From Asterias rubens (Eukaryota): a DNA stretch of 64,000 bases. The stretch is taken from contig NC_047078.1 in assembly GCF_902459465.1 (NCBI RefSeq), positions 6,944,001 to 7,008,000 on the forward strand, read 5' to 3'. Each line of letters opens with the position of its first letter. Position 1 is the stretch's first letter. Both the position numbers and the translations under genes were made by a program. This document shows positions 4,380-44,742 of this stretch, piece by piece. Under the pieces are notes generated by a model that was not told where the DNA came from, did no database searches, and saw only the letters and a list, made by a program, of their open reading frames with translations.

Positions 4380-4859
4380 GTAAGAAGAACAAACTTATTA
4401 CTGATGGTTTGTTATCTTAGTGAAGGATCCAGCATAAACATGCAATTCAACTCAATGAATTTCAAATTTGCATACTTAACTTACATAAGGGATAAAGAAT
4501 AGTTTTATTGCTTTACCCTTACACCTATGTGCGTTATGCAGTGTATAAAATACTTTCCTTGAGTCATGTGAAAAACTCCTAGACCTTGACCTTTTTTTAG
4601 AGCAAATGTCTTGCCACTACAAACCAACGAGATTGACCCTAAGACACCTGCCTTAAAGTACTATGCAAATCTCAGTGTATTAACAGATTTTAATGTATTA
4701 ACCAGATTTCAAGTCAAATCACATAACTTTGAGAAATGTTGCGGATGAAGTGCCCATCAGTGTGTTAACATCAGAAATAACAATGTAGTTTACATCGACT
4801 ACATTATGTGGGTAAACCTTGACATTGTTACTATAGACTTAATTTTTTTTTTTACACAG

Positions 4860-8872: not shown

Positions 8873-9987
8873 GATAATCCGATTCGTCCAAGGCGCCCCA
8901 TTTATGGATCTTCAAAGTCATCTTCATCTCCACGTAGTTTCAGTGTAGAACAGCGTGGTAAGTAAATAATACAACCTCAAATGTCATCTTTCAAAAAGCT
9001 ATTTTGACCTTTTAAGATATGTTAAATTATTTTATACATATTTAGGTTTAGTAAAATTTCATGTAAGGATAGTTCAGTTAGTTTTCATCTTGCAGTGGTC
9101 ATGTTAAACAAGTAGAGTCTCGAGCACTTGAAACCTGTGGTTATATTAGTTCACAAATAGCACAAGTAAAGCAAAAGGAACATTCATTATTTTCTATGGT
9201 GAGGCCCAACTGATATACTTTTAAAAATTTAACAAAACACCAAACACAGAAAATATAAGCCTGACAGAAGAGAGCAAAACATGTTCAGAAAAACAAAGCA
9301 AATATTCTCTGCCAATAATTTATATTTGTTATTTCCCTGATTATTGCAGCCTCTCGTACCTAAAATCTATCAAAAAATAAACACTTTGTCAAGCTTCCAT
9401 AATATTTATTTCCCTGTCATAAACACCCAGTTTCGAACGTCATTTTTTAGGGAATTTAATTGATGTTCGCGAAACAATTATGGAATTTGCATGACACCCG
9501 AGAAAATTGATGGAGTAAGTTGCAAAATGATGCTCGGAACTTTATTACCTTTGCGCAATCCACATCAGAGCAGAAATTGATTTAGGTTAAAAAAAACTAG
9601 CTCGTAAACTTTCGACAAGAAATGGCTACAAGTGTAAACCAAAGAGCAACTGAAAGTCAACTGGATCAACAGACATCAAGAGACTTGTCAGAATTACATG
9701 TTCTTTCGAGTAAGATTCACTTGGTGTCATTAAAGCTGAATCTACATAGGATTAAATCTGTAGATGAAGCTCAAGTGAAAACAGACACCAAAGTATCAGA
9801 GAAACATCATCATGACAAAATGAAAGGGGCTCATTTTAAACTAGAGTTAACACTCAGAAGTGTGTTTATTTTGTCATTGTTCTTGCTATCACTTATACAC
9901 AGGTGTACTCAAATAATTTGTGCGTCCTTTTTTTAATACACAGAAGTAGAACCACTGAGTGCAAGAGAAGTGCAGGAAAAAGAAAAG
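8873..9987 (+). CDS. Exons H (8873-8957) and D (9944-9987)
   Basis: Near-identical to the 1204/2275 copies; splice sites intact. Confidence 0.55.
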
Positions 9988-10865
9988 GTTTGCTAATAAA
10001 TAGTTTGCCATTGCGTACAAAAAATGCCTAGTCCACAATTAAATACAATAATGTGATAATGGAATCCGATCCAGAGGATGTTGAACTTAAGGACGACACT
10101 TTCAAAAGGAAATGTTGCACAACAAAATCCATTACAACTGTCACTGGTTGGTTTTTACTTATCACTTTTAAGTTTAAGTTTCTGCCTTACAAACATTATC
10201 AAGCAAGATCTGACTTATCATGTCCCCACCTCTGTGCATAAACCTCTTTGATGCGGTATACCTACTAGGGGTTAAGATTGTTACCCTTCAGTTTCATGGC
10301 AATGATCTTTGAAAGTAAAACTGTCTGATCAAATGCACAAATTTAAAATGTCAAATTTATATGTTACTCAAATATTCAACTTGTAACAAATTATCTTGTG
10401 TATTTGCATACAAATTTAACTAAATCCTGGCAAATTAATACATGATTAGCGAAATAACTTGAAAGGGAAACCGACGACAGATTCACATCATAAGATGGAC
10501 TTTGTGCAGCCTGGAAAATCTACACACAAGGTTTGAACTATCACCTGATAAATATATATAAAAAGTCTATTTAAATTATATGAGCAGTCTGTTTTCCACT
10601 GTATAGCATGTAGTGGGTGTATTCGCGCACCGTAAGGATACATGTAGTGCAGTTTTGAATCTGTTGGAATGCACATCACCAAAGATCCTGATATAAACTA
10701 TTTAACATATTTTACTTTTTGCTTTAAAATATTACTCCACAGTCAACAATAATTATTTTTCATAACACTTATTTTCACTAAGGTCAACTGATTTCATTTT
10801 TATTTGGTTTGGTTTGAAAGCAAAAAACACTATCACAGTTTGTTGCTAATATTATGTGTTAAATA

Positions 10866-11204
10866 AAAACGTACTCGGTAACAAGCAACGGATAGCTGTT
10901 GATAGTATAAAACATTGTGAGAAACGGCTCCCTCTGAAGTGACATAGTTTTCGAGAAAAAAAAGTAATATTCCACGAATTTGATTTTTAGACCTCAGATT
11001 AAGAATTTGAGGTCTCGAAATCAACCATCTAAACGCACACAACTTCGTGTGACAAGGCTGATTTTTTCTTTCATTATTATCTCGCAACTTCGACGATCAA
11101 TTGAGCTCAAATGTTCACAGGTTTGTTATTTTATGCATATGTTGAGATACACCAAGGGAGAAGACTGGTCTTTGACAATTACCAATAGTGTCCACTGTGT
11201 TTAA
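10866..11204. mobile_element. Same MITE family, one copy per tandem unit (also 14875-16433 interrupted, 20103-20443, 24121-24461)
   Basis: Core gatagtataaaacattgtgagaaacggctccctctgaag...ttgagatacaccaag...aattaccaatagtgtcc; source of ORFs MRDNNERK/MIFRPQIK. Confidence 0.88.
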
Positions 11205-11237
11205 ACCAACATTTTGTTTTATGTTTTGTTTTACCAG

Positions 11238-13995
11238 CTCAAAATGGCCGAGATCCCTAAGATTTCTGAGAGTCCAGTGAGGACAACCGGAACAAAGGAA
11301 GTACAACAAACCAAAGACAAAGGTTAGTGGTGATGATTGGTGATTGGAAACTTATAAACAAGGAGAGACCAGATACTGTGGAAATGCAATACATGCCAAA
11401 ACTGGCAATACAAAACGTATAAATATTATGCAAGTTGTTAACAATTACTTATAAAAAGAATATTACAATCCTACATGCTTCTCATTTCTTTTAGCCGGAT
11501 TTGAAACAAAAGTAATAACATATTTTGCTTTACTTGGGGACTTGGTGAAAGTAAATAAATCTGGACAGACATCGATTGCAACTTATAGTTCAGTCATACT
11601 GCAGCTGGACCTGGAAAAAATTGCAACAGAATTGATTTCAACTGCTATGGGTTCTATAAACACCCAAGTTGAACATATCAAAAGTCCTCCAAAATCCAAG
11701 TGTCAGAAAGCCTTCAAATTCGCAAAAAAACATGATTTTGGAGGACTTTTGATATGTTAAAACTTGGGTGTCTATAGAACCCAAAACAGTTGAAATCGAT
11801 TCTGTTGCAATTTTGTCCAAGTCAAGCCAGTATTTCTGATAGATTGACTGGACAATTAGGCCTATATCATTCTTTGAAAGACTAAAGCTGGTTCACATTT
11901 TGAAAACAAACATGTTGCAGAAATAGTTGAAATCGATTGAATTTTACTAGCAAGGCACAACTTCATCAGATAAAGCTTAACATGGCTAAAGCATAATACA
12001 TGTATTATGTATTTTTTTCTTTTTAGTTATTCACGTGTCTTTGTTTTTATGTTCATATATTCAAAGTCTCTTTTCTTTGTACATGTATGTTAAAAAGGGA
12101 AACCGACGACAGATTCACATCATAAGAAGGCCATTGTGAAGCCTGGAAAATCTACACACAAGGTTTGAATTATCACCTGATAAATATATATAAAAAGTCT
12201 ATTTAAATGATATGAGCAGTCTGTTTTCCACTGTATAGCATGTAGTGGGTGTATTCGTGCACCGTAAGGATACATGTAGTGCAGTTTTGAATCTGTTGGA
12301 ATGCACATCACCAAAGATCCTGATATAAACTATCTAACATATTTTACTTTTTGCTTTAAAATATTACTCCACAGTCAACAATATTTATTTTTCACAACAC
12401 TTATTTTCAACTGATCTCATTTTTATTTGGTTTGGTTTGAAAGCAAAAAACACTAATATTATGTGTTACATGTAATGTATTAAAACATTCGGTTTTATGC
12501 AGGTTATGATTGATCAATGGTTATCTCATTAGACTCATTAGTCAAAAGTTATTATTCAAAATAATATTTATTTGTCATTGAAGGGAAGTTAAATCTTACA
12601 CTTCTGGTTTCTTTATTTAGATTTGGTTTGATTTAAAACACAAATGGATTATTACCCTTTTTTGCTAATATTAAGTTGTTATACTCTAAGTATTGTTAAA
12701 ACTTTGATGTTTACTCAGGTTGCATTTTATTATTCGTTATCTCAGTTTTTTAAAACAAAATAAAGACCACAGACGTAGAAATCCTTTTACTGTATTCTCG
12801 CCTCGATTTGTTTTACCCAGGGTCCTCTGAAGAAGTATGGATCTTCAAAGTCATCTTCATTTTCACGTAGTTTCAGTGTAGAACATCGTGGTAAGTAAAC
12901 AATAATAATATTATTAATAATAATCTATTGATTTTATATTGCGCTCTCTCCTGGATACATTTATGTTGTTTTTGTTTGTTACTGCCAACAACATAAGGCA
13001 ACTTCTATGAAATATGGACCGTTTTACAACCTCAAATGTCATCTTTCAAAAAACTATTTTGACCTTTTAAGATATGTTCAATTATTGTATACATATTTAG
13101 GTTTAGTGAAATGTTCATGTAAGGATAGTTCAGTTAGTTTTCATCTTGCAGTGGTCATGTTAAACAAGTAGAGTCTCGAGCACTTGAAACCTGTGGTTAT
13201 ATTATTTCACAAATAGCACAAGTAAAGCAAAATGAACAGTCATTATTTTCTATGGTGAGGCCCAACTGATATACTTTCAAAAAAATTAAACAAAACACCA
13301 AACACAGGAAATATAAGCCTGACAGAAGAGAGCAAAAAAGTTTCAGAAAAACAAAGCAAATATTCTCTGTCAATAATTTATATTTGTTATTTCCCTCTCG
13401 TACCTAAAATCTATCAAAAAATAAACACTTTGTCAAGCTTCCATACTATTTATTTCCCTGTCATAAACACCCAGTTTCGAACGTAATTTTTTAGGGAATT
13501 TAATTGATGTTCGCGAAACAATTACGGAATTTGCATGACGCCCGAGAAAATTGATGGAGTAAGTTGCAAAATGATGCTCGGAACTTTATTACCTTTGCGC
13601 AATCCACATCAGAGCAGAAATTGATTTAGTTTCCAAAAACTAGCTCGTAAACTTTCGACAAGAAATGGCTACAAGTGTAAACCAAAGAGCAACTGAAAGT
13701 CAACTGGATCAACAGACATCAAGAGACTTGTCAGAATTACATGTTCTTTCGAGTAAGATTAAATCTGTAGATGAAGCTCAAACGAAAACAGACACCAAAG
13801 TATCAGAGAAACAATATCATTACAAAATGAAAGAGGCTCATTTTAAACTAGAGTTAACACTCAGAAGTGTGTTTATTTTGTCATTGTTCTTGCTATCACT
13901 TATACACAGGTGTACTCAATTAATTTGTGCATACTTTTTTTTAATACACAGAAGTAGAACCACTGAGTGCAAGAGAAGTGCAGGAAAAAGAAAAG
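11238..13995 (+). CDS. Tandem unit 1 exon cassette: I 11238-11322, J 11495-11511, H 12821-12890, D 13952-13995
   Basis: LKMAEIPKISESPVRTTGTKEVQQTKDK / AGFETK / GPLKKYGSSKSSSFSRSFSVEHR / EVEPLSAREVQEKEK; 216 nt = 72 codons; strong splice sites at I (long T tract, AG|gttagt) and H (gtaagt). Confidence 0.55.
11608..11823. repeat. Foldback inverted repeat (~90-bp arms, ~36-nt loop), one per tandem unit (also ~16837-17052, 20847-21062, 24865-25081)
   Basis: gacctggaaaaaattgcaacagaa...aaaagtcctccaaaatc pairs with gattttggaggacttttg...ttctgttgcaattttgtccaagtc; probably a MITE. Confidence 0.85.
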
Positions 13996-14911
13996 GTTTG
14001 CTAATAAATAGTTTGCCATTGCGTACAAAAGATGCCTAGTCCACAATTAAATACAATAATGTGATAATGGAATCCGATCCAGAGGATGTTGAACTTAAGG
14101 ACGACACTTTCAAAAGGAAATGTTGCACAACAAAATCCATTACAACTGTCACTGGTTGGTTTTTACTTATCACTTTTAAGTTTAAGTTTCTGCCTTACAA
14201 ACATTATCAAGCAAGATCTGACTTATCATGTCCCCACCTCTGTGCATAAACCTCTTTGATGCGGTATACCTACTAGGGGTTAAGATTGTTACCCTTCAGT
14301 TTCATGGCAATGATCTTTGAAAGTAAAACTGTCTGATCAAATGCACAAATTTAAAATGTCAAATTTATATGTTACTCAAATATTCAACTTGTAACAAATT
14401 ATCTTGTGTATTTGCATACAAATTTAACTAAATCCTGGCAAATTAATACATGATTAGCGAAATAACTTGAAAGGGAAACCGACGACAGATTCACATCATA
14501 AGATGGACTTTGTGCAGCCTGGAAAATCTACACACAAGGTTTGAACTATCACCTGATAAATATATATAAAAAGTCTATTTAAATTATATGAGCAGTCTGT
14601 TTTCCACTGTATAGCATGTAGTGGGTGTATTCGCGCACCGTAAGGATACATGTAGTGCAGTTTTGAATCTGTTGGAATGCACATCACCAAAGATCCTGAT
14701 ATAAACTATTTAACATATTTTACTTTTTGCTTTAAAATATTACTCCACAGTCAACAATAATTATTTTTCATAACACTTATTTTCACTAAGGTCAATTGAT
14801 TTCATTTTTATTTGGTTTGGTTTGAAAGCAAAAAACACTATCACAGTTTGTTGCTAATATTATGTGTTAAATAAAAACGTACTCGGTAACAAGCAACGGA
14901 TAGCTGTTGAT

Positions 14912-16127
14912 TATTACCACATACGACACAGAAACACTTTGGTTTGATCAACAGAGTGGCCTGAGCAGCCTTTTATTTGTTTATGCTGCAATGAGCTAAG
15001 CCATAACAAAATGCTTGTATTTTATCAAACTTAACCAGATCTCCGGCAGTTGCCTGCCATCCGCAAGATCTTCTAAAATGTGTTTAATGCAAACCAATAA
15101 GCTGAACTGATTCCCGGTAGTTGCATCACCCGCGAAATCAAAAGTAACAAATAAAGCAATTAAAGCCAAACTGATTTCCGGCAGTTGCATAAATCCGCGA
15201 AATCAAAAGTAATAAACAAAGCAATTAAAGCCAAACTGATTTCCGCGAAATCAATAACAGTAAATCAACCAATAGCAAAACTGACCTCCGGCCGTAGCTA
15301 AATCCGCGAGGTCGCCAAAACTACTACTGCATACAGGTTTCCGGACGAGGCTGTACGACCGCGAAACCAAAAGCGTTAAAATAAAAGGTTTGCAAAGGAA
15401 CTTGAAATTAAAGCAAATATAGCACAGTTAAATAAACAGCACATATTCCCCGGTTGTTGGCAAATTAAGACAAAGCGACTAAAATATGTTTCATCCCGTC
15501 AACGCAGAATACCATAGTTATAATAATCATAATACATTTAACAAAGACCCCAAAGTAGCAAATTATAACAGCTGAATGAATATACCTGAGGACTATTGAG
15601 GTGTAAACAATGAAATACCGCCTGCGGGACCAACCTGAGAAGAGCGAAAAACTTCAAAAAACCCAAAGGGAAAAAGAAGGAAATTCTCTTACTGGCTCCT
15701 GAGATTTATGGCAGCCGAGTGTAAAAACTCCAGGATGTTCCTCATAAAATCAAATAAGCAACTTACAACGAAACGATAGCAATTTAGCCATTACTAAAAT
15801 TTTAGCTCAAAACGAATTTTAGAAACCGATACCAATTTTTTTAAGAAGGCGGTAGAATGGGGATGGCGGTGGGAATTCGAAAATTGATGACTGAAAAATT
15901 GTCAACTCAACTCAAAGGCTGCTCAGACAAAAGTGATCAAGCCAGCACAGACCGGCTATCAAGGAATGCAAGGCGCCGTCCAAGGGGGTCAATTGGCCGA
16001 AAGGCGAGGCAATAAACCAAATGCCCGGTCCAGACTGGTGACAGATTGAGCACACAGGTCCCGCGACAAGCCCGCCTGACTGTCTAGCGGTAATAAAATA
16101 TTTGAAGCACAAAGTTTTGGCCTCAAA
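14912..16127. mobile_element. Unclassified 1216-bp insertion inside a MITE of tandem unit 2
   Basis: Absent from the other three units; flanked by TTGAT at 14907-14911 and 16128-16132; more GC-rich; no convincing ORF. Confidence 0.88.
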
Positions 16128-16466
16128 TTGATAGTATAAAACATTGTGAGAAACGGCTCCCTCTGAAGTGACATAGTTTTCGAGAAAAAAAAGTAATATT
16201 CCACGAATTTGATTTTTAGACCTCAGATTAAGAATTTGAGGTCTCGAAATCAACCATCTAAACGCACACAACTTCGTGTGACAAGGCTGATTTTTTCTTT
16301 CATTATTATCTCGCAACTTCGACGATCAATTGAGCTCAAATGTTCACAGGTTTGTTATTTTATGCATATGTTGAGATACACCAAGGGAGAAGACTGGTCT
16401 TTGACAATTACCAATAGTGTCCACTGTGTTTAAACCAACATTTTGTTTTATGTTTTGTTTTACCAG

Positions 16467-19226
16467 CTCAAAATGGCCGAGATCCCTAAGATTTCTGAGA
16501 GTCCAGTGAGGACAACCGGAACAAAGGAAGTACAACAAACCAAAGACAAAGGTTAGTGGTGATGATTGGTGATTGGAAACTTATAAACAAGGAGAGACCA
16601 GATACTGTGGAAATGCAATACATGCCAAAACTGGCAATACAAAACGTATAAATATTATGCAAGTTGTTAACAATTACTTATTAAAAGAATATTACAATCC
16701 TACATGCTTCTCATTTCTTTTAGCCGGATTTGAAACAAAAGTAATAACATATTTTGCTTTACTTGGGGACTTGGTGAAAGTAAATAAATCTGGACAGACA
16801 TCGATTGCAACTTATAGTTCAGTCATACTGCAGCTGGACCTGGAAAAAATTGCAACAGAATTGATTTCAACTGCTATGGGTTCTATAAACACCCAAGTTG
16901 AACATATCAAAAGTCCTCCAAAATCCAAGTGTCAGAAAGCCTTCAAATTCGCAAAAAAACATGATTTTGGAGGACTTTTGATATGTTAAAACTTGGGTGT
17001 CTATAGAACCCAAAACAGTTGAAATCGATTCTGTTGCAATTTTGTCCAAGTCAAGCCAGTATTTCTGATAGATTGACTGGACAATTAGGCCTATATCATT
17101 CTTTGAAAGACTAAAGCTGGTTCACATTTTGAAAACAAACATGTTGCAGAAATAGTTGAAATCGATTGAATTTTACTAGCAAGGCACAACTTCATCAGAT
17201 AAAGCTTAACATGGCTAAAGCATAATACATGTATTATGTATTTTTTTCTTTTTAGTTATTCACGTGTCTTTGTTTTTATGTTCATATATTCAAAGTCTCT
17301 TTTCTTTGTACATGTATGTTAAAAAGGGAAACCGACGACAGATTCACATCATAAGAAGGCCATTGTGAAGCCTGGAAAATCTACACACAAGGTTTGAATT
17401 ATCACCTGATAAATATATATAAAAAGTCTATTTAAATGATATGAGCAGTCTGTTTTCCACTGTATAGCATGTAGTGGGTGTATTCGTGCACCGTAAGGAT
17501 ACATGTAGTGCAGTTTTGAATCTGTTGGAATGCACATCACCAAAGATCCTGATATAAACTATCTAACATATTTTACTTTTTGCTTTAAAATATTACTCCA
17601 CAGTCAACAATATTTATTTTTCACAACACTTATTTTCAACTGATCTCATTTTTATTTGGTTTGGTTTGAAAGCAAAAAACACTAATATTATGTGTTACAT
17701 GTAATGTATTAAAACATTCGGTTTTATGCAGGTTATGATTGATCAATGGTTATCTCATTAGACTCATTAGTCAAAAGTTATTATTCAAAATAATATTTAT
17801 TTGTCATTGAAGGGAAGTTAAATCTTACACTTCTGGTTTCTTTATTTAGATTTGGTTTGATTTAAAACACAAATGGATTATTACCCTTTTTTGCTAATAT
17901 TAAGTTGTTATACTCTAAGTATTGTTAAAACTTTGATGTTTACTCAGGTTGCATTTTATTATTCGTTATCTCAGTTTTTTAAAACAAAATAAAGACCACA
18001 GACGTAGAAATCCTTTTACTGTATTCTCGCCTCGATTTGTTTTACCCAGGGTCCTCTGAAGAAGTATGGATCTTCAAAGTCATCTTCATTTTCACGTAGT
18101 TTCAGTGTAGAACATCGTGGTAAGTAAACAATAATAATATTATTAATAATAATCTATTTATTTTATATTGCGCTCTCTCCTGGATACATTTATGTTGTTT
18201 TTGTTTGTTACTGCCAACAACATAAGGCAACTTCTATGAAATATGGACCGTTTTACAACCTCAAATGTCATCTTTCAAAAAAATATTTTGACCTTTTAAG
18301 ATATGTTCAATTATTGTATACATATTTAGGTTTAGTGAAATGTTCATGTAAGGATAGTTCAGTTAGTTTTCATCTTGCAGTGGTCATGTTAAACAAGTAG
18401 AGTCTCGAGCACTTGAAACCTGTGGTTATATTATTTCACAAATAGCACAAGTATAAAGCAAAATGAACAGTCATTATTTTCTATGGTGAGGCCCAACTGA
18501 TATACTTTCAAAAAAATTAAACAAAACACCAAACACAGGAAATATAAGCCTGACAGAAGAGAGCAAAAAAGTTTCAGAAAAACAAAGCAAATATTCTCTG
18601 TCAATAATTTATATTTGTTATTTCCCTCTCGTACCTAAAATCTATCAAAAAATAAACACTTTGTCAAGCTTCCATACTATTTATTTCCCTGTCATAAACA
18701 CCCAGTTTCGAACGTAATTTTTTAGGGAATTTAATTGATGTTCGCGAAACAATTACGGAATTTGCATGACGCCCGAGAAAATTGATGGAGTAAGTTGCAA
18801 AATGATGCTCGGAACTTTATTACCTTTGCGCAATCCACATCAGAGCAGAAATTGATTTAGTTTCCAAAAACTAGCTCGTAAACTTTCGACAAGAAATGGC
18901 TACAAGTGTAAACCAAAGAGCAACTGAAAGTCAACTGGATCAACAGACATCAAGAGACTTGTCAGAATTACATGTTCTTTCGAGTAAGATTAAATCTGTA
19001 GATGAAGCTCAAACGAAAACAGACACCAAAGTATCAGAGAAACAATATCATTACAAAATGAAAGAGGCTCATTTTAAACTAGAGTTAACACTCAGAAGTG
19101 TGTTTATTTTGTCATTGTTGTTGCTATCACTTATACACAGGTGTACTCAATTAATTTGTGCATACTTTTTTTTAATACACAGAAGTAGAACCACTGAGTG
19201 CAAGAGAAGTGCAGGAAAAAGAAAAG
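16467..19226 (+). CDS. Tandem unit 2 exon cassette: I 16467-16551, J 16724-16740, H 18050-18119, D 19183-19226
   Basis: Same exons as unit 1. Confidence 0.55.
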
Positions 19227-20476
19227 GTTTGCTAATAAATAGTTTGCCATTGCGTACAAAAGATGCCTAGTCCACAATTAAATACAATAATGTGATAATG
19301 GAATCCGATCCAGAGGATGTTGAACTTAAGGACGACACTTTCAAAAGGAAATGTTGCACAACAAAATCCATTACAACTGTCACTGGTTGGTTTTTACTTA
19401 TCACTTTTAAGTTTAAGTTTCTGCCTTACAAACATTATCAAGCAAGATCTGACTTATCATGTCCCCACCTCTGTGCATAAACCTCTTTGATGCGGTATAC
19501 CTACTAGGGGTTAAGATTGTTACCCTTCAGTTTCATGGCAATGATCTTTGAAAGTAAAACTGTCTGATCAAATGCACAAATTTAAAATGTCAAATTTATA
19601 TGTTACTCAAATATTCAACTTGTAACAAATTATCTTGTGTATTTGCATACAAATTTAACTAAATCCTGGCAAATTAATACATGATTAGCGAAATAACTTG
19701 AAAGGGAAACCGACGACAGATTCACATCATAAGATGGACTTTGTGCAGCCTGGAAAATCTACACACAAGGTTTGAACTATCACCTGATAAATATATATAA
19801 AAAGTCTATTTAAATTATATGAGCAGTCTGTTTTCCACTGTATAGCATGTAGTGGGTGTATTCGCGCACCGTAAGGATACATGTAGTGCAGTTTTGAATC
19901 TGTTGGAATGCACATCACCAAAGATCCTGATATAAACTATTTAACATATTTTACTTTTTGCTTTAAAATATTACTCCACAGTCAACAATAATTATTTTTC
20001 ATAACACTTATTTTCACTAAGGTCAACTGATTTCATTTTTATTTGGTTTGGTTTGAAAGCAAAAAACACTATCACAGTTTGTTGCTAATATTATGTGTTA
20101 AATAAAAACGTACTCGGTAACAAGCAACGGATAGCTGTTGATAGTATAAAACATTGTGAGAAACGGCTCCCTCTGAAGTGACATAGTTTTCGAGAAAAAA
20201 AAGTAATATTCCACGAATTTGATTTTTAGACCTCAGATTAAGAATTTGAGGTCTCGAAATCAACCATCTAAACGCACACAACTTCGTGTGACAAGGCTGA
20301 TTTTTTCTTTCATTATTATCTCGCAACTTCGACGATCAATTGAGCTCAAATGTTCACAGGTTTGTTATTTTATGCATATGTTGAGATACACCAAGGGAGA
20401 AGACTGGTCTTTGACAATTACCAATAGTGTCCACTGTGTTTAAACCAACATTTTGTTTTATGTTTTGTTTTACCAG

Positions 20477-23244
20477 CTCAAAATGGCCGAGATCCCTAAG
20501 ATTTCTGAGAGTCCAGTGAGGACAACCGGAACAAAGGAAGTACAACAAACCAAAGACAAAGGTTAGTGGTGATGATTGGTGATTGGAAACTTATAAACAA
20601 GGAGAGACCAGATACTGTGGAAATGCAATACATGCCAAAACTGGCAATACAAAACGTATAAATATTATGCAAGTTGTTAACAATTACTTATTAAAAGAAT
20701 ATTACAATCCTACATGCTTCTCATTTCTTTTAGCCGGATTTGAAACAAAAGTAATAACATATTTTGCTTTACTTGGGGACTTGGTGAAAGTAAATAAATC
20801 TGGACAGACATCGATTGCAACTTATAGTTCAGTCATACTGCAGCTGGACCTGGAAAAAATTGCAACAGAATTGATTTCAACTGCTATGGGTTCTATAAAC
20901 ACCCAAGTTGAACATATCAAAAGTCCTCCAAAATCCAAGTGTCAGAAAGCCTTCAAATTCGCAAAAAAACATGATTTTGGAGGACTTTTGATATGTTAAA
21001 ACTTGGGTGTCTATAGAACCCAAAACAGTTGAAATCGATTCTGTTGCAATTTTGTCCAAGTCAAGCCAGTATTTCTGATAGATTGACTGGACAATTAGGC
21101 CTATATCATTCTTTGAAAGACTAAAGCTGGTTCACATTTTGAAAACAAACATGTTGCAGAAATAGTTGAAATCGATTGAATTTTACTAGCAAGGCACAAC
21201 TTCATCAGATAAAGCTTAACATGGCTAAAGCATAATACATGTATTATGTATTTTTTTCTTTTTAGTTATTCACGTGTCTTTGTTTTTATGTTCATATATT
21301 CAAAGTCTCTTTTCTTTGTACATGTATGTTAAAAAGGGAAACCGACGACAGATTCACATCATAAGAAGGCCATTGTGAAGCCTGGAAAATCTACACACAA
21401 GGTTTGAATTATCACCTGATAAATATATATAAAAAGTCTATTTAAATGATATGAGCAGTCTGTTTTCCACTGTATAGCATGTAGTGGGTGTATTCGTGCA
21501 CCGTAAGGATACATGTAGTGCAGTTTTGAATCTGTTGGAATGCACATCACCAAAGATCCTGATATAAACTATCTAACATATTTTACTTTTTGCTTTAAAA
21601 TATTACTCCACAGTCAACAATATTTATTTTTCACAACACTTATTTTCAACTGATCTCATTTTTATTTGGTTTGGTTTGAAAGCAAAAAACACTAATATTA
21701 TGTGTTACATGTAATGTATTAAAACATTCGGTTTTATGCAGGTTATGATTGATCAATGGTTATCTCATTAGACTCCATAGTCAAAGGTTATTATTCAAAA
21801 TAATATTTATTATTCATTGAAGGGAAATGAAATCTTACACTACTGGTTTCTTTATTTAGATTTGGTTTGATTTAAAACACAAATGGATTATTACCCTTTT
21901 TTGCTAATAATAAGTTGTTATACTCTAAGTATTTTTAACAATTTTGATGTTTATTCAGGTTGCATTTTATTGTTCGTTATCTCAGTTTTTTAGAACAAAA
22001 TAAAGACCACAGACGTAGAAAACCTTTTACTGTATTCTCCCCTCGATTTGTTTTACCCAGGGTCCTTCGATGGGTCACACTATTCATTTTCCTCCATCTT
22101 TTTATGGATCATCTTCACCTCCACGTAGTTTCAGTGTAGAACATCGTGGTAAGTAAATAATAATAATAATAATTTATTTATTTTATATTGCGCTCTCTCC
22201 TGGATACATGTTGGTAGTTTTTGTTTGTTACTGCCAACAACATAAGGCACCTTCTTTGAAATATGGAACGTTTTACAACCTCAAATGTCATCTTTCAAAA
22301 AACTATTTTGACCTTTTAAGATATGTTAAATTATTTTATACATATTTAGGTTTAGTAAAATGTTCATGTAAGGATAGTTTAGTTAGTTTTCATCTTGCAG
22401 TGGTCATGTTAAACAAGTAGAGTCTCGAGCACTTGAAACATGTGGTTATATTAGTTCACAAATAGCACAAGTAAAGCAAAAGGAACATTCATTATTTTCT
22501 ATGGTGAGGCCCAACTGATATACTTTCAAAAAAATTAAACAAAACACCAAACACAGAAAATATAAGCCTGACAGAAGAGAGCAAAAAAGTTTCAGAAAAA
22601 CAAAGCAAATATTCTCTGTCAATAATTTATATTTGTTATTTCCCTCTCGTACCTAAAATCTATCAAAAAATAAACACTTTGTCAAGCTTCCATAATATTT
22701 ATTTCCCTGTCATAAATACCCAGTTTCGAACGTCATTTTTTAGGGAATTTAATTGATGTTCGCGAAACAATTACGGAATTTGCATGACACCCGAGAAAAT
22801 TGATGGAGTAAGTTGCAAAATGATGCTCGGAACTTTATTACCTTTGCGCAATCCACATCAGAGCAGAAATTGATTTAGTTTCCAAAAACTAGCTCGTAAA
22901 CTTTCGACAAGAAATGGCTACAAGTGTAAACCAAAGAGCAACTGAAAGTCAACTGGATCAACAGACATCAAGAGACTTGTCAGAATTACATGTTCTTTCG
23001 AGTAAGATTAAATCTGTAGATGAAGCTCAAACGAAAACAGACACCAAAGTATCAGAGAAACAATATCATTACAAAATGAAAGAGGCTCATTTTAAACTAG
23101 AGTTAACACTCAGAAGTGTGTTTATTTTGTCATTGTTGTTGCTATCACTTATACACAGGTGTACTCAATTAATTTGTGCATACTTTTTTTTAATACACAG
23201 AAGTAGAACCACTGAGTGCAAGAGAAGTGCAGGAAAAAGAAAAG
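20477..23244 (+). CDS. Tandem unit 3 exon cassette: I 20477-20561, J 20734-20750, H 22061-22148, D 23201-23244
   Basis: Variant H = GPSMGHTIHFPPSFYGSSSPPRSFSVEHR (88 nt, frame preserved). Confidence 0.55.
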
Positions 23245-24494
23245 GTTTGCTAATAAATAGTTTGCTATTGCGTACAAAAGATGCCTTATCCACAATTAAA
23301 TACAATAATGTGATAATGGAATCCGATCCAGAGGATGTTGAACTTAAGGACGACACTTTCAAAACAAAATGTTGCACAACAAAATCCATTACAACTGTCA
23401 CTGGTTGGTTTTTACTTATCACTTTTAAGTTTAAGTTTCTGCCTTACAAACATTATCAAGCAAGATCTGACTTATCATGTCCCCACCTCTGTGCATAAAC
23501 CTCTTTGATGCGGTATACCTACTAGGGGTTAAGATTGTTACCCTTCAGTTTCATGGCAATGATCTTTGAAAGTAAAACTGTCTGATCAAATGCACAAATT
23601 TAAAATGTCAAATTTATATGTTACTCAAATATTCAACTTGTAACAAATTATCTTGTGTATTTGCATACAAATTTAACTAAATCCTGGCAAATTAATACAT
23701 GATTAGCGAAATAACTTGAAAGGGAAACCGACGACAGATTCACATCATAAGATGGACTTTGTGCAGCCTGGAAAATCTACACACAAGGTTTGAACTATCA
23801 CCTGATAAATATATATAAAAAGTCTATTTAAATGATATGAGCAGTCTGTTTTCCACTGTATAGCATGTAGTGGGTGTATTCGCGCACCGTAAGGATACAT
23901 GTAGTGCAGTTTTGAATCTGTTGGAATGCACATCACCAAAGATCCTGATATAAACTATTTAACATATTTTACTTTTTGCTTTAAAATATTACTCCACAGT
24001 CAACAATAATTATTTTTCATAACACTTATTTTCACTAAGGTCAACTGATTTCATTTTTATTTGGTTTGGTTTGAAAGCAAAAAACATTATCACAGTTTGT
24101 TGCTAATATTATGTGTTAAATAAAAACGTACTCGGTAACAAGCAACGGATAGCTGTTGATAGTATAAAACATTGTGAGAAACGGCTCCCTCTGAAGTGAC
24201 ATAGTTTTCGAGAAAAAAAAGTAATATTCCACGAATTTGATTTTTAGACCTCAGATTAAGAATTTGAGGTCTCGAAATCAACCATCTAAACGCACACAAC
24301 TTCGTGTGACAAGGCTGATTTTTTCTTTCATTATTATCTCGCAACTTCGACGATCAATTGAGCTCAAATGTTCACAGGTTTGTTATTTTATGCATATGTT
24401 GAGATACACCAAGGGAGAAGACTGGTCTTTGACAATTACCAATAGTGTCCACTGTGTTTAAACCAACATTTTGTTTTATGTTTTGTTTTACCAG

Positions 24495-27400
24495 CTCAAA
24501 ATGGCCGAGATCCCTAAGATTTCTGAGAGTCCAGTGAGGACAACCGGAACAAAGGAAGTACAACAAACCAAAGACAAAGGTTAGTGGTGATGATTGGTGA
24601 TTGGAAACTTATAAACAAGGAGAGACCAGATACTGTGGAAATGCAATACATGCCAAAACTGGCAATACAAAACGTATAAATATTATGCAAGTTGTTAACA
24701 ATTACTTATTAAAAGAATATTACAATCCTACATGCTTCTCATTTCTTTTAGCCGGATTTGAAACAAAAGTGATAACATATTTTGCTTTACTTGGGGACTT
24801 GGTGAAAGTAAATAAATCTGGACAGACATCGATTGCAACTTATAGTCCAGTCATACTGCAGCTGGACCTGGAAAAAATTGCAACAGAATTTATTTCAACT
24901 GCTATGGGTTCTATAAACACCCAAGTTGAACATATCAAAAGTCCTCCAAAATCCAAGTGTCCGAAAGCCTTCAAATTCGCAAAAAAAAAATGATTTTGGA
25001 GGACTTTTGATATGTTAAACTTGGGTGTCTATAGAACCCAAAACAGTTGAAATCGATTCTGTTGCAATTTTGTCCAGGTCAAGCCAGTATTTCTGATAGA
25101 TTGACTGGACAATTAGGCCTATATCATTCTTTGAAAGACTAAAGCTGGTTCACATTTTGAAAACTAACATGTTGCAGAAATAGTTGAAATCGATTGAATT
25201 TTACTAGCAAGGCACAACTTCATCAGATAAAGCTTAACATGGCTAAAGCATAATACATGTATTATGTATTTTTTTCTTTTTAGTTATTCACGTGTCTTTG
25301 TTTTTATGTTCATATATTCAAAGTCTCTTTTCTTTGTACATGTATGTTAAAAAGGGAAACCGACGACAGATTCACATCATAAGATGGACTTTGTGAAGCC
25401 TGGAAAATCTACACACAAGGTTTGAATTATCACCTGATAAATATATATAAAAAGTCTATTTAAATGATATGAGCAGTCTGTTTTCCACTGTATAGCATGT
25501 AGTGGGTGTATTCATGCATTCGCGCACCGTTATAAGGATACATGTAGTGCAGTTTTGAATCTGTTGGAATGCACATCACCAAAGATCCTGATATAAACTA
25601 TCTAACATATTTTACTTTTTGCTTTAAAATATTACTCCACAGTCAACAATAGTTATTTTTCACAACACTTATTTTCAACTGATCTCATTTTTATTTGGTT
25701 TGGTTTGAAAGCAAAAAACACTAATATTATGTGTTACATGTAATGTATTAAAACATTCGGTTTTATGCAGGTTATGATTGATCAATGGTTATCTCATTAG
25801 ACTCATTAGTCAAAAGTTATTATTCAAAATAATATTTATTTGTCATTGAAGGGAAGTTAAATCTTACACTTCTGGTTTCTTTATTTAGATTTGGTTTGAT
25901 TTAAAACACAAATGGATTATTACCCTTTTTTGCTAATATTAAGTTGTTATACTCTAAGTATTGTTAAAACTTTGATGTTTACTCAGGTTGCATTTTATTA
26001 TTCGTTATCTCAGTTTTTTAAAACAAAATAAAGACCACAGACGTAGAAATCCTTTTACTGTATTCTCCCCTCGATTTGTTTTACCCAGAGTCCTCGGATG
26101 AGTTACATTCCTCAAATGAGTCGCATTCCTCAAATTCCTCCATCTTTTTGGGGATCTTCAAAGTCATCTTCATCTCCTCGTAGTTTCAGTGTAGAACATC
26201 GTGGTAAGTAAATAATAATAATAATAATAATAATTTATTGATTTTATATTGCGCTCTCTCCAGGATACATATATGTAGTTTTTGTTTGTTACTGCCAACA
26301 ACATAAGGCATCTTCTTTGAAATATGGATCGTTTTACCACCTCAAATGTCATCTTTCAAAAAACTTATTTGACCTTTTAAGATATGTTAAATTATTTTAT
26401 ACATATTTAGGTTTAGTAAAATTTCATGTAAGGATAGTTCAGTTAGTTTTCATCTTGCAGTGGTCATGTTAAACAAGTAGAGTCTCGAGCACTTGAAACC
26501 TGTGGTTATATTAGTTCACAAATAGCACAAGTAAAGCAAAAGGAACATTCATTATTTTCTATGGTGAGGCCCAACTGATATACTTTCAAAAAAATTAAAC
26601 AAAACACCAAACACAGAAAATATAAGCCTGACAGAAGAGAGCAAAACATGTTCAGAAAAACAAAGCAAATATTCTCTGTAAATAATTTATATTTGTTATT
26701 TCCCTGATTATTGCAGCCTCTCGTACCTAAAATCTATCAAAAAATAAACACTTTGTCAAGCTTCCATAATATTTATTTCCCTGTCATAAACACCCAGTTT
26801 CGAACGTCATTTTTTAGGGAATTTAATTGATGTTCGCGAAACAATTATGGAATTTGCATGACACCCGAGAAAATTGATGGAGTAAGTTGCAAAATGATGC
26901 TCGGAACTTTATTACCTTTGCGCAATCCGCATCAGAGCAGAAATTGATTTAGGTTAAAAAAACTAGCTCGTAAACTTTCGACAAGAAATGGCTACAAGTG
27001 TAAACCAAAGAGCAACTGAAAGTCAACTGGATCAACAGACATCAAGAGACTTGTCAGAATTACATGTTCTTTCGAGTAAGATTCACTTGGTGTCATTGAA
27101 GCCGGATCTACATAGGATTGAATCTGTAAATGAAGCTCAAATGAAAACAGACACCAAAGTATCAGAGAAACAACATCATGACAAAATGAAAGAGGCTCAT
27201 TTTAAACTAGAGTTAACACTCAGAAGTGTGTTTATTTTGTCATTGTTCTTGCTATCACTTATACACAGGTGTACTCAAATAATTTGTGCGTCCTTTTTTA
27301 ATTTACAGAAGTAGAACCACTGAGTGCAAGAGAAGTGCAGGAAAAAGAAAAGGTTTGCTAACAAATAGTTTGCTATTGCGTACAAAAGATGCCTTATCCA

Positions 27401-30400
27401 CAATTAAATACAATAATGTGATAATGGAATCCGATCCAGAGGATGTTGAACTTAAGGACGACACTTTCAAAACGAAATGGTGCACAACGAAATCCATTAC
27501 AACTGTCACTGGTTGGTTTTTACTTATCAATTTTAAGTTTAAGTTTCTGCCTTACAAACATTATCAAGCAAGCTCTGACTTATCATGTCCCCACCTCTGT
27601 GCATAAACCTCTTTGATGCGGTATACCTACTAGGGGTTAAGATTGTTACCCTTAAGTTTCATGGCAATGATTATTGAAAGTAAAACTGTCTGATCAAATG
27701 CACAAATTTAAAATGTCAAATTTATATGTTACTCAAATATTCAACTTGTAACAAATTATCTGGTGTATTGGCATACAAATTTAACTAAATCCTGGCAAAT
27801 CAATACATGATGAGCGAAATTACTTACATTAGACTCCTACCGGGAACAAACAAGTGTTATCGGCGGGAATCAACTATGATCTACAAAATGTGTTAAGGAT
27901 TATCAACTTGTGTTATGTAGTTTTGAGCTACATTGTTGGATAGGCCTTATAGCATGATAGCATGATGGTTTACTTGTCTTTCACTAAACAATCCACCACT
28001 TCGAAAGCAGCTCCCTTTAGTTGAAACTCATAAAATAAGTTGTTACTGGTCAACCTTTTACCAGTCTATAAGGAACACTTACGGTTGATCCCTCAGCTAT
28101 GTGTATAAATAGCTTCACAAACCAAAACTTCTTACAGGTGACTGCCCTGATTACTCGGGTAGTTTCCGCAACCTTGTATTCCGTTTGCATTTGTCCCTTC
28201 ATACCATCTCTTTATTACACTTTATCCTTAACTTTTCACTCATTTAAAAACTGTTCTGATTTTTCTTAAGCATTTGAGGCACATCTCAAAGGAAATCGAC
28301 GAGCTCTCATCTATAGTAAGAACGGAGATGCTACCTGGTCAGTTACATTCATTGATCGAGAAATTGATCAAGGAACAGAAACAGCTTGTAAACTTCCAAC
28401 AAGAAATGGCTGCAAGTGTAGAACAAAGAGCAACTGACAGTCAACTGGATCAACGGAAATCAAGAGACTTGTCAGAATTATTTATTCTTTTGAGTAAGAT
28501 CCACTTGGTGTCATTAAGGCTGAATCTACATAGGATGAAATCTGTTGATGAAGCTCAAATGAAAACGGACACCGAAGTATCAGAGAAACAAGATTACAAA
28601 GATTACAAAATGTATCAGGCTCTTTCTAAACTAGAGTGGACACTGCAGCAGCATCTTCATACACTACAACATATCGAAAGGTATGATACAAAACCACAGA
28701 ACATAGAAAGTGTATACTACTTCCAACAGATGCTAGTTGATGATTTGCAAGGCTTGGCTCAACAAACCCTACAGGTAAAGGAGCCTGCCTATCAAGAGCA
28801 GTGCATGAAGAATATGAATGTGTTCATTAACACACAGCAGCAATTGGTTCAAAACCTCACAAATCTGCAAAAGCAAAAAAAAGGCAGCAAGCTGGAGAAG
28901 GCGTCCTCTAAGCAAGATGATCTACCTGCACGGGACACTGGCAAGCAGCAAAATGAACTGGAACTGATCACAGAACAGACTGATTTGATGAAGGAGCCCT
29001 CTAAGCAAGATGATCTACCTGCAGGGGAGGTTGGTAAACAGCTAAATGAACTGGAACTGATCACAGAACAGACTGATTTGATGAAGGAGCCCTCTAAGCA
29101 AGATGATCTACCTGCAGGGGAGGTTGGTAAACAGCAAAACGAACTGGAGCTGATCACAGAACAGACTGATTTGATGAAGGAGCCCTCTAAGCAAGATGAT
29201 CTACCTGCAGGGGAGGTTGGTAAACAGCTAAATGAACTGGAACTGATCACAGAACAGACTGATTTGATGAAGGAGCCCTCTAAGCAAGATGATCTACCTG
29301 CAGGGGAGGTTGGTAAACAGCAAAACGAACTGGAACTGATCACAGAACAGACTGAGTTGTTGCTAGATTGTCTCCGCTGGATGCGATGTCGTGGAGTATG
29401 GCAAGAGTGCACTGACCATTTCATATGGATGTTGATATGTTCTGTACTTACTGTACATCATATGTCCCATGGTCTTAGCTGGGAATGTGTTGAGGAGGTC
29501 TTCTCATCACATTCACATTTTCATTACAGGCCGAGGTATGGCAAACTGCAACAACTTGGTTACATTATAGACAGGACCATGCACAGTCAAAGAAGATTCT
29601 TGAAAGCTGAACTGTGGAATAAAATACAAAGTAAGAAGAACAAACTTATTACTGATGGTTTGTTATCTTAGTGAAGGATCCAGCATAAACATGCAATTCA
29701 ACTCAATGAATTTCAAATTTGCATACTTAACTTACATAAGGGATAAAGAATAGTTTTATTGCTTTACCCATACACCTATGTGCGTTATGCAGTGTATAAA
29801 ATACTTTCCTTGAGTCATGTGAAAAACTCCTAGACCTTGACCTTTTTTTAGAGCAAATGTCTTGCCACTACAAACCAACGAGATTGACCCTAAGACACCT
29901 GCCTTAAAGTACTATGCAAATTTCAGTGTATTAACAGATTTTAATGTATTAACCAGATTTCAAGTCAAATCACATAACTTTGAGAAATGTTGCGGATGAA
30001 GTGCCCATCAGTGTGTTAACATCAGAAATAACAATGTAGTTTACATCGACTACATTATGTTGGTAAACCTTGACATTGTTACTATAGACTTATTTTTTTT
30101 TTTACACAGCAATTAATACAGTTATCAAAATATATGTCTAAAGTGGTGGAAAGAAACGTGGGTATATAATGTTTTTGTTTTTTATGAACAGACTGATTTA
30201 TATTTGTTTACAAATGTTCAGAGGCACTGACACCTCGGAAACGTCGAGCAAGACGCTTAATGAAGGGTGACCCAACTGATGTGAGACACTCAAAGCAAGA
30301 AGACCAAATTGATGTGAGACATAATTATCTTAGTCAAAAGTTGATTCCACTTTAAACTATTCTACCTGTTAAATATCAAATAGATACTGCTGATAATAAT

Positions 30401-31776
30401 CAAGGTTGAAAGAAAAAAAGATTACAGGTTAACAAATGACCGCCCTACTGTATGTACGATAACCTTGTTTCTTAAAATGAAAAGCACTTAATTTAATGCG
30501 TTTTCATTTAATGTACCTATGAAGTCTCAAGTTTCCAGAACTTTTTTCCCCCTGTAGTATATAAATGTTAGATTTGTACTTGTGGTTTGTTTACTTTTTT
30601 TTTTTTTTCAAGATGAACAAGCTTGGAATCACACCATTGATTAATAAAACATTCACATTCTTTTTCTCCTTGGTACAGGAATCTGACCTGGAAGGGCTCA
30701 AGATCAGTATGAAAAAAACTTTGTTGTCGGATAAAGATAAAAGTATACCAACATACATCTTATATGAAATTAATGATTTCATTTCCCTCACTCTCTTCAT
30801 CTCCCTCACTCCACATTGGCACACCATGCCTCACTATCTTCATCTCCCTCACTCCACCTTGGCACACCATGCTTCACTATCTTCATCTTCCCTCACTCCA
30901 CCTTGGCACACCATGCTTCACTATCTTCATCTCCCTCACTCCACCTTGGCTTACCATGCCTCACTCTCTTCATCCTCCCTCACTCCACCTTGGCTCACCA
31001 TGCCTCACTATCTTCATCTCCCTCACTCCACCTTGGCACACCATGCTTCACTATCTTCATCTTCCCTCACTCCACCTTGGCACACCATGCTTCACTATCT
31101 TCATCTCCCTCACTCCACCTTGGCTTACCATGCCTCACTCTCTTCATCCTCCCTCACTCCACCTTGGAACACCATGCTTCACTCTCTTCATCCTCCCTCA
31201 CTCCACCTTGGCACACCATGCTTCACTCTCTTCATCTTCCCTCACTCCACCTTGGCACACCTTGCTTCACTCTCTTCATCTCCCTCACTCCACCTTGGCA
31301 CACCTTGCTTCACTCTCTTCATCTTCCCTCACTCCACCTTGGCACACCATGCTTCACTCTCTTCATCTTCCCTCACTCCACCTTGGCACACCTTGCTTCA
31401 CTCTCTTCATCTCCCTCACTCCACCTTGGCTCACCATGCTTCACTCTCTTCATCTTCTCTCATTCTCTTCTTCTACCCTCATTCTTTCCTGGCTCACTAA
31501 GACTCACTCTCTTCATCTTCCCGCACTCCACATTGACACCATGCCTCACCCTCTTCATCTTGCCTCACTCCACCTTGGCTCACCATGCTTCACTCTCTTC
31601 ATCTTCCCTCACTACACATTGGCTCACCATGCCACACTCTCTTCATCTTTCCTCAGGATACCTCATTGTTCTTAATATCAGTTATACACAGGTGGATTTT
31701 ATTAATTTGTTTGTGTCTTTTTTGTACACAATCCATCTATTTCGAAGAACCAAAGAGAGCAAGAATGACAAAGAAG
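24495..31776 (+). CDS. Predicted N-terminal modular exons of the ZU5-Death gene (I-J-H-D-E-A-B-C-D')
   Basis: I 24495-24579, J 24752-24768, H 26089-26203, D 27309-27352, E 28138-28158, A 28271-29630, B 30222-30313, C 30679-30742, D' 31748-31776. All are open and phase-compatible. From the ATG at 24501 through the Death exons the model totals 3507 nt (1168 aa plus stop). Micro-exons J, E and D' are the weakest links. Confidence 0.55.
28271..29630 (+). CDS. Exon A copy 2: coiled-coil-rich exon with five 31-aa repeats
   Basis: Matches ORF 28274-29671; cttaag acceptor and CAA A|gtaaga donor; Q/E/L/K-rich helical sequence; no recognisable family. Confidence 0.75.
28901..29365 (+). repeat. Coding VNTR, 93-bp unit (EPSKQDDLPAGEVGKQ[Q/L]NELELITEQTDLMK) x5
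   Basis: Directly visible tandem repeats; approximate ends. Confidence 0.95.
30785..31660. repeat. Same 43-44-bp minisatellite, shorter array
   Basis: Follows exon C as in the other copies; ~0.9 kb. Confidence 0.95.
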
Positions 31777-32269: not shown

Positions 32270-32520
32270 GTTTCGAGGCATTGAACACTATTGGTAATTG
32301 CTCAAAATAATTGTTACTATAAAAACGTACTTGGTATCAAGCCACGGAGAGCTGTCGATAGTTTAAAACATTGTGAGAAACGGCTCCCTCTGAAAGAACA
32401 TAGTTTTCGAGAAAGAAGTAATTTTCCACGAATTTGATCTGGATACCTCAGAATTAGATTTTTAGGTCCCGAAATCAATATCTGAGAGCACAAAACTTAA
32501 TGTGACAGGGGTGTTTTTTC
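32270..32520. mobile_element. Same MITE family, left part truncated at the inversion breakpoint
   Basis: ggcattgaacactattggtaattgctcaaaataattg...; ends where the inverted duplication begins. Confidence 0.78.
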
Positions 32521-32535
32521 TAAGAAGAACAGTGA

Positions 32536-33406
32536 TGTGATCCTTCGATTTCCTCTGAGATGTGCCTTAAACGCTTAAGAAAAATCAGAACAGTTTTTAA
32601 ATTATTAAAAAGTTAAGGATAAAGTGTAATAAAGAGATGGTATGAAGGGACAAATGCAGACGGAATACAAGGTCGGGGAAACTACCCGAGTAATCAGGGC
32701 AGTCACCTGTAATCAGTCTTGGTTTGTGAAACTATTATACACACTGGTAAAAGGTTAACCAGTAACAATTTATTTTATAAGTTTCAACCAAAGGGAGCTG
32801 CTTTCGAAGTGGTGGATTGTTTAGTGAAAGACAAGCAAACCATCATGCTATCATGCTATAAGGCCTATCCAACAATGTAGCTCAAAACTACATGACACAA
32901 GTTGATAATCCTTAACACATTTTGTAGATCATTGTTGATTCCCAGCGATAACACTTGTTTGTTCCCGGTAGGAGTCTTATATGTAAGTTATTTCGCTCAT
33001 CATTTATTAATTTGCCAGGATTTAGTTAAATTTGTATGCCAATACACCAGATAACTTGTTACAAGTTGAATATTTGAGTAACATATAAATTTGACATTTT
33101 AAATTTGTGCATTTGATCAGACAGTTTTACGTTCAAAGATCATTGCCATGAAACTGAAGGGTAACAATCTTTACCCCTAGTAGGTATACCGCATCAAAGA
33201 GGTTTATGCACAGAGGTGGGGACATGATAAGTCAGAGCATGCTTGATAATGTTTGTAAGGCAGAAACTTAAACTTAAAATTGATAAGTAAAAACCAACCA
33301 GTGACAGTTGTAATGGATTTCGTTGTGAAACATTTCGTTTTGAAAGTGTCGTCCTTAAGTTCAACATCCTCTGGATCGGATTCCATTACACATTATTGTA
33401 TTTAAT
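32536..33406 (-). repeat. Inverted duplication of post-D intron, exon E and the start of exon A
   Basis: Reverse complement matches ~27420-28305, including the ttcttacag-type acceptor/GTGACTGCCCTGATTACTCGG exon and the cttaag acceptor; ORF 33204-33386(-) repeats the intronic MESDPED peptide. Confidence 0.92.
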
Positions 33407-44324: not shown

Positions 44325-44419
44325 AAATTGAAACATCTGTCAGAAAAGCTAGAGGGACTCGATAAACCTGGTCACTATGCTTATCTTACCCAAATACCCA
44401 GTGGGTTTAACCTCACTTG

Positions 44420-44742
44420 GTAACGAGTAATGGGGAGAGGTTGATAGTATAAAACATTGTGAGAAACGGCTCCCTCTGAAGTGACGTAGTTTTCCAGAAA
44501 GAAGTAATTTTTCACAAATTCGATTTCGAGACCTCAAGTTTAGAATTGGAGGTCTTGAAATCAAGCATCAGAAAGCACACAACTTCGTGACACAAGGTTT
44601 TTTTTCTTTCATTATTATCTCGCAAATTCGATGACCGATTGAGCTCAAATTTTCACAGGTTTGTTATTTTATGCATATGTTGAGATACACCAACTGTGAA
44701 GACTAGTCTTTGACAATTACCAATAGTGTCTACTGTCTTTAA
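44420..44742. mobile_element. Same MITE family
   Basis: Same core; right TIR aattaccaatagtgtctactgtctttaa. Confidence 0.85.

Follow-up and report, generated by a model that had tools for sequence, protein, structure and literature searches.

A candidate cassette exon that keeps its reading frame while diverging sharply among near-identical tandem gene units

How can one short exon differ radically between copies of a duplicated gene that are otherwise nearly identical, and still keep its frame in every copy? The question is raised by a 64,000-nucleotide stretch of contig NC_047078.1 (positions 6,944,001 to 7,008,000 of the forward strand), which we call the window. Self-comparison and feature mapping over the whole window revealed that its + strand carries a tandemly duplicated, lineage-specific sea-star gene of an orphan coiled-coil protein. 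A small exon of this gene, here termed H, is present in seven copies that represent four distinct alleles of 85, 70, 88 and 115 nt (H85, H70, H88 and H115), as found by pattern search and multiple alignment. A first-pass annotation of the window held that H is translated and shows the pattern expected under diversifying selection. Our analysis leads to a reading to which we assign an even chance, namely that H is a genuine, young, lineage-specific coding cassette exon whose divergence stems both from old haplotypes moved by conversion and from accelerated amino-acid change.

Four units of ~4 kb, located at 10.4-27.8 kb, are 94-99.8% mutually identical in the self-comparison. In order, each unit comprises exons 1 and 2, H, psiA' (the 5' half of the terminal exon A, copied in degenerate form) and exon X, and the units are stacked 5' of gene B. 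Only in gene B, among the copies in the window, do exons 1 and 2, H and X occur together with a full exon A. Along units 1-3 and then gene B, the H alleles follow the order H70-H70-H88-H115, and the truncated units that carry H70 and H88 have no terminal exon of their own. All H copies lie on the + strand. H70 is found in unit 1 (12821-12890) and unit 2 (18050-18119), H88 (GPSMGHTIHFPPSFYGSSSPPRSFSVEHR) in truncated unit 3 (22061-22148), and H115 in gene B (26089-26203). H85 is found at 1204-1288, at 8873-8957 and, 5' of gene C, at 59459-59543. These seven copies should not be counted as independent, since there is no difference among the three H85 copies or between the two H70 copies, the latter residing in units that share 99.8% identity over 4 kb.

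Each of the seven copies is bounded by an AG acceptor that follows a pyrimidine tract, weaker in H85 (AAG/G), and by a G/gtaagt donor. All alleles are 3n+1 in length and open in one frame only, as the shared 3' end contains stops in both other frames. The 3' half is conserved and encodes YGSS..PRSFSVE[H/Q]R, and within H115 a stretch of 18 nt is tandemly duplicated (MSYIPQ/MSRIPQ). The H donor is directly followed by an (AAT)n microsatellite (26204-26243 in gene B, + strand), the length of which varies among units and at which the H85 units carry a 122-nt deletion. The positions, lengths and peptides of the seven copies, their freedom from stops, the shared 3' end and the gtaagt donor are all as the first-pass annotation had described them.

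The frame in which H would be read can be derived from its neighbors. The closest annotated relative of the gene is A. rubens LOC117301753 (uncharacterized protein P0001; E=4e-149, 65% amino-acid identity over exon A), and exons 1, 2 and A are homologous to its 27-kb locus (L001), as seen by tblastn for exon A and by DNA alignment for exons 1 and 2. In gene B, exon 1 (24495-24579, + strand) is 85 nt long, carries the ATG at 24501 and ends in phase 1. As at the A. rubens locus, an acceptor of its own lies 6 nt 5' of the ATG; identical copies of exon 1 start at 11238, 16467 and 20477. Exon 2 (25355-25419, + strand, 65 nt), the homologue of A. rubens exon 2 (L001:10628-10699), ends in phase 0, with further full copies at 12098, 17327 and 21337 and acceptor-less partial copies near 10472, 14480, 19711 and 23729. 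Because exons 1 and 2 are homologous to those of the A. rubens RefSeq model, phase 0 is fixed at the H acceptor, and this is the only open frame of H. H then leads from phase 0 to phase 1, and exon X (27309-27352, + strand, 44 nt, 3n+2, EVEPLSAREVQEKEK) leads from phase 1 back to phase 0, the phase of the exon A acceptor at 28271. X is present in eight copies (2275, 9944, 13952, 19183, 23201, 27309, 52340 and 60531), with canonical splice sites in 8/8. Joining exon 1, exon 2, H115, X and exon A thus yields an uninterrupted open reading frame (ORF) of 567 amino acids, compared with 514 when both H and X are left out, while H without X reaches a stop at residue 141 and X without H at residue 49. 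The gene has at least five exons, and its predicted N-terminus, MAEIPKISESPVRTTG, is hydrophilic.

When we aligned the units and plotted divergence along them, as the first-pass annotation had proposed, H was the sole sharp peak (60-nt sliding window over the whole unit). The variable 5' part of H (its first 17-66 nt) shows 0.21-0.52 substitutions per alignable site plus indels of 9-45 nt, versus 0.003-0.055 substitutions per site in the flanks that can be aligned in 7/7 copies (~290 nt upstream and ~680 nt downstream; Fisher p 9e-5 to 5e-16). The indels within H measure 9, 15, 18, 27 and 45 nt, all multiples of three, whereas those in the flanking introns measure 1, 2, 14 and 122 nt; psiA' has an indel of 36 nt. 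Within the variable part, H88 and H115 differ by 12 non-synonymous and 0 synonymous changes, and pN is 0.34-0.49 with a pS of 0 for both H115 vs H88 and H115 vs H70, figures that rest on four alleles and hence on too few for a selection test. Compensated frameshifts were considered as the source of the peptide differences and set aside, as free nucleotide alignments were ambiguous and gave no clear +1/-1 pair.

The surroundings of H have a history of their own. Shoulders of ~350 bp on each side of H are 3-10% divergent, versus 0-2% farther out; units 1 and 3, for example, are identical over most of their length and 3-10% apart only in these shoulders. H itself is 5-10x more divergent than its shoulders. 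Moreover, the closest partner changes at H: H70 and H115 differ at 1/289 sites upstream and by 4.1% downstream, and H85 and H115 by 5.2% upstream and 0.9% downstream. The first-pass description of nearly identical flanking introns is therefore correct in amount (0.3-5.5%), but its "scattered substitutions" masks a mosaic. The mosaic flanks and shoulders suggest that the H haplotypes predate the latest unit duplication or homogenization and were exchanged with breakpoints at H, an age that contradicts a simple picture of recent duplication followed by selection. Both strands of the rest of the window were searched for sequences that could have served as donors of the variable segments, and none was found.

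We next consider RNA. Four runs were mapped on 23720-28890, with the (AAT)n tract masked as a repeat, and an interspersed repeat at 24120-24465 (depth 1e5-1e6) swamped the junction tables and left the depth bins usable. In run X1 the bins over H115 have depths of 16.5 and 52.4, with 3.3 and 0 in the adjacent intron bins, and in run X5 they have depths of 33.2 and 10.2, with 0 and 0 in the adjacent intron bins. These data indicate that H is present in RNA of organism A. The exon X bin shows the highest X1 depth between H and exon A, and depth is also high in the exon 2 bin.

Several observations weigh against H being a regularly used coding exon. In run X2 the depth over H115 is only 5.5 and 0.1 while exon A reaches 100-150; in organism B, H may often be skipped or may be too divergent to map. 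No splice junction with H was recovered from the four runs, given junction tables swamped by the repeat, and three sampled H88-specific words were absent from RNA runs X1, X5 and X9, the contigs of which drop rare forms. In the A. rubens RefSeq model exon 2 is spliced straight to exon A, a phmmer search with the H115 peptide against 1.84 billion proteins produced 0 matches, and the choice of exon X rests partly on frame closure. Finally, within the window neither exon 1 nor exon 2, with its phase-0 end, lies 5' of any of the three H85 copies. The first-pass claim of translation is thus supported in part, by the agreement between the only open frame and the exon 2 phase, the 3n length differences, closure by X, the 12:0 ratio and the H115 depth. 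Overall, that H behaves like a coding exon is largely supported.

Sensitive BLAST and Smith-Waterman comparisons found in the 27-kb A. rubens locus no counterpart of H and the ~1.4 kb around it, of psiA', of an alignable X or of the 4-kb array, and the same methods found no H homologue in the intron that precedes the real exon A. As neither this locus nor the protein libraries contain H, the exon appears to be young and lineage-specific. Metagenome contigs were also scanned for exact matches to the upstream intron and to the conserved H 3' end, with 0 matches.

On the reading of H as a young coding cassette, the exon would belong to the N-terminal, unstructured part of a coiled-coil protein that is specific to asteroids and related to LOC117301753. 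Since neither H nor X can be included without the other if exon A is to stay in frame, purifying selection would keep each H allele 3n+1 in length and without stops, with the 3' half conserved and the 5' half acting as a tolerant linker. Two causes would then combine to produce the divergence. First, the H haplotypes would be older than the recently duplicated or homogenized remainder of the unit and would have been moved among units by gene conversion or unequal crossing-over with breakpoints at H. Second, in-frame indels and substitutions that alter amino acids would accumulate faster in H than in its own flanks. The diversifying selection proposed by the first-pass annotation agrees with the 12:0 ratio; the mosaic, however, is explained at least as well by older haplotypes moved by gene conversion. 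Taken together, the data favor an exon that is translated, constrained in its frame and subject to accelerated amino-acid change.

The main neutral alternative is a mutagenic recombination hot spot by the variable (AAT)n tract, which we regard as less probable though deserving of real weight. Here, at most gene B would use H, the other copies being dead pseudo-exons; repair of recurrent double-strand breaks, or gene conversion, beside the (AAT)n tract would have left clustered substitutions and indels, and the 3n lengths and open frame would be due to chance, aided by 3-nt-periodic TCT/TCA repeats. The coincidence of the recombination breakpoints with H suits this alternative well, as does the position of the variable (AAT)n tract and of the 122-nt deletion against the H donor. 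It would also account for truncated units without a terminal exon, for the failure to see H88 in RNA runs X1, X5 and X9 and for the absence of H from the A. rubens locus. Moreover, there are just three independent length differences, so that the chance of all being 3n is ~1 in 27. Length is not the only regularity, however: 3n lengths, the lack of stops in 4/4 alleles, a frame that equals the exon 2 phase and closure by X would all have to coincide. The flanking indels, which are not 3n, 0 synonymous changes among 12 differences and an H that is 5-10x more divergent than shoulders sharing its history likewise argue against neutral relics.

The first-pass annotation can also be taken in full, with all cassettes translated, for instance all four strung before exon A, and with recent adaptive diversification giving each H its own function. 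Indeed, the exon chain through all four cassettes is open for 837 amino acids (exon 1 with its own acceptor reads LKMAE...), the exon 1 acceptor lies 6 nt before the ATG both here and in A. rubens, and transcripts that start upstream should run on to gene B because the truncated units have no terminal exon. The pN and pS values of H115 against H88 and H70 also fit. We nevertheless consider this full version improbable. The shoulders and mosaic flanks indicate that the H haplotypes predate the unit duplications and did not diverge recently in place, H70 is present in two of the four cassettes, the sampled H88 words have no match in RNA runs X1, X5 and X9, and no junction from X to exon 1 was seen in the repeat-swamped RNA mapping. 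Nor does any signal peptide or recognizable interaction domain hint at a conflict-driven target. Similarly doubtful is the proposal that the four cassettes constitute a working variable module, either strung in one mRNA or chosen one per transcript from cassette-specific starts. Were it true, H diversity would be actively maintained, the strung version would place several H linkers each before a conserved RSFSVE motif, and the locus would be an intracellular, non-immune and non-venom hypervariable exon array in an echinoderm.

A regulatory role, in which H is a spliced non-coding or "poison" exon whose inclusion without X shifts the frame, triggers decay and tunes the amount of protein, is quite unlikely. 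The stops at residue 141 for H alone and at residue 49 for X alone would serve such a role, and an X2 depth at H far below that of exons 2 and A and an A. rubens model without H are compatible with it. Yet a poison exon has no need of 3n+1 lengths and an open frame in all alleles, nor of an X that has intact splice sites in 8/8 copies and restores the frame together with H. Least probable of all is that collapsed or chimeric repeat units created false H variants, for although units 1 and 2 could represent a duplicated haplotype given their 99.8% identity over 4 kb, the differences among the variants are structured and in frame, unlike junction noise, and the three sampled H88 words occur in seven DNA-type data sets (three organism A samples, X6-X8, and four marine-metagenome runs, possibly the assembly source), which indicates that H88 is not an assembly artefact.

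We now turn to the gene and its surroundings. The A. rubens locus is syntenic with the window, as it has the same 43/44-bp satellite and the same ZU5/death-domain gene downstream, the latter being located 3' of gene B by Pfam. Judged by homologous exons and synteny together, the gene is a member of a LOC117301753-like asteroid coiled-coil family. Pfam and the ESM atlas contain no family for the protein, and a word-indexed protein search with exon A and with its first 123 amino acids retrieved only A. rubens P0001 and unspliced environmental-DNA ORFs (P0002-P0004). One of these, P0003 (JGI metagenome 3300045300), is a hybrid ORF that starts like the exon A of copy D (97% identical) and continues as a psiA'-like read-through into the intron, which suggests that other individuals carry recombinant copies.

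The large coiled-coil exon A of gene B (28271-29671, + strand) is entered through a phase-0 acceptor and includes both a 93-bp coding repeat and the stop codon. Other coiled-coil copies on the + strand are the exons A of gene A (~3200-4420, with the 93-bp coding repeat), copy D (53226-54326) and gene C (61493-63079). The 93-bp repeat is present 2.3 times in gene A, 5 times in gene B and 7 times in gene C. In gene A the exon is broken within this repeat into two overlapping ORFs (3244-3984 and 3944-4420), which points to a frameshift, so that gene A may be a pseudogene. The degenerate psiA' (26939-27240 in gene B, + strand) is located between H and X in every unit. Because each unit carries psiA' and an acceptor-less partial exon 2 at its border, the units are recognized as partial gene duplicates, and their borders consist of partial exon 2 and an interspersed repeat, not of microsatellites.

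Exon A also contains a GTAAGA donor (29630-29640), 36 nt before the stop, that is conserved with A. rubens (L001 ~14680). The A. rubens RefSeq model uses this donor to reach a second A-type exon by way of a 32-nt exon of 3n+2 length (L001 15394-15425), and by analogy tandem genes in the window may be joined into multi-module transcripts. As this donor leaves phase 1, which fits X and not H, the H85 copies, which are all situated behind satellites, may be skipped. A 103-nt candidate exon at 26461-26563 with strong splice sites was rejected as coding here, since it meets a stop when entered from H. Two further observations concern small exons. Exon 2 of gene B (25385-25395) differs from its copies at 12128-12138, 17357-17367 and 21367-21377 by three clustered substitutions, all of them amino-acid changing (KMDF vs KKAI), in otherwise identical surroundings. 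A contig from the ENA SOLA marine metagenome (L002), 95.8% identical to window positions 1832-2929 in gene A and representing environmental DNA from another individual of this or a very close species, carries at ~444-508 an X allele of 65 nt, which has gained 24 nt by tandem duplication and lost 3 nt, so that its length remains 3n+2.

The window is also rich in repeats. C-rich 43/44-bp satellite arrays of 15-48 copies lie 3' of each exon A (5494-7195, 30786-31655 and 55662-57776); the satellite, whose period is not a multiple of 3, is kept in position and sequence (84-90%) in A. rubens (L001 22986-24364). An interspersed repeat of ~345 bp is located 30 bp 5' of exon 1 in every unit. The gene B copy is that at 24120-24465, which matched no Rfam family and no tRNA, and further copies include 10863-11208, 20102-20447, 32319-32521 and 44415-44742, as well as L001 21153-21488 in A. 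rubens. Its summed RNA-contig depth is enormous (1e5-3.5e6). The unit 1 copy is interrupted by a 1.2-kb insertion (14911-16128), probably a transposon, that holds a 65-bp tandem repeat (15105-15245). Lastly, an inverted piece of the exon A upstream region together with the first 70 nt of exon A, 95-97% identical, is found on the minus strand at 32545-33406, between the gene B satellite and the ZU5 gene.

Exons whose divergence far outpaces that of their introns are a classic sign of conflict-driven evolution, as in venoms, immunity and fertilization. How does H compare with known systems of this type? The nearest known patterns are ASSET and the Sp185/333 clusters. In the accelerated segment switch in exons (ASSET) of snake-venom genes, short exon segments are radically changed between paralogues although the introns remain much alike and the frame is preserved (PMC2711939); its authors discuss recombination, point mutations and compensated frameshifts and leave the mechanism unresolved (PMC2711939). 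Like an ASSET segment, H is a short exon segment that differs radically between paralogues within highly conserved flanking introns (0.3-5.5%). Unlike it, the H segment lies right against the acceptor, the paralogues copy only part of the gene and are represented by four alleles, with RNA depth at the H115 position only, and the protein is apparently an intracellular coiled-coil orphan and not a secreted toxin.

The Sp185/333 (SpTransformer) genes of the purple sea urchin lie in ~4.5-kb tandem segmental duplications with similar flanks bounded by microsatellites, and their diverse coding part shows in-frame presence or absence of blocks, for which gene conversion and microsatellite-promoted instability have been proposed (PMC3091723). 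The H locus shares with them an echinoderm host, tandem duplication, similar flanks and in-frame coding diversity. An (AAT)n tract abuts the H donor, but the unit borders are formed by a partial exon 2 and an interspersed repeat. By contrast with Sp185/333, the locus shows no sequence relationship, Pfam match, signal peptide or two-exon structure, its variable part is confined to 17-66 nt of one small exon, and an immune role is not indicated. By sequence or architecture, then, H belongs to neither ASSET nor Sp185/333. The arrangement of four variable cassettes 5' of just one constant exon that is complete (exon A in gene B) recalls the Dscam exon clusters, the clustered protocadherins and UGT1A. 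Here, however, the cassettes are phase-closed with an acceptor on their first exon, so that serial inclusion is as likely as the choice of one, two of the four are identical, and there is no sign of mutually exclusive use or of per-cassette promoters.

The immediate biological weight of the H locus is modest, as the gene is an orphan and only four alleles are available. It is at the same time a compact and very young example in which, given units that are 95-100% identical, the switch is placed within ~60 nt directly after a splice acceptor and recombination breakpoints fall at the same spot, so that mutagenic gene conversion versus selection becomes directly testable. The H array is a small but interesting case.

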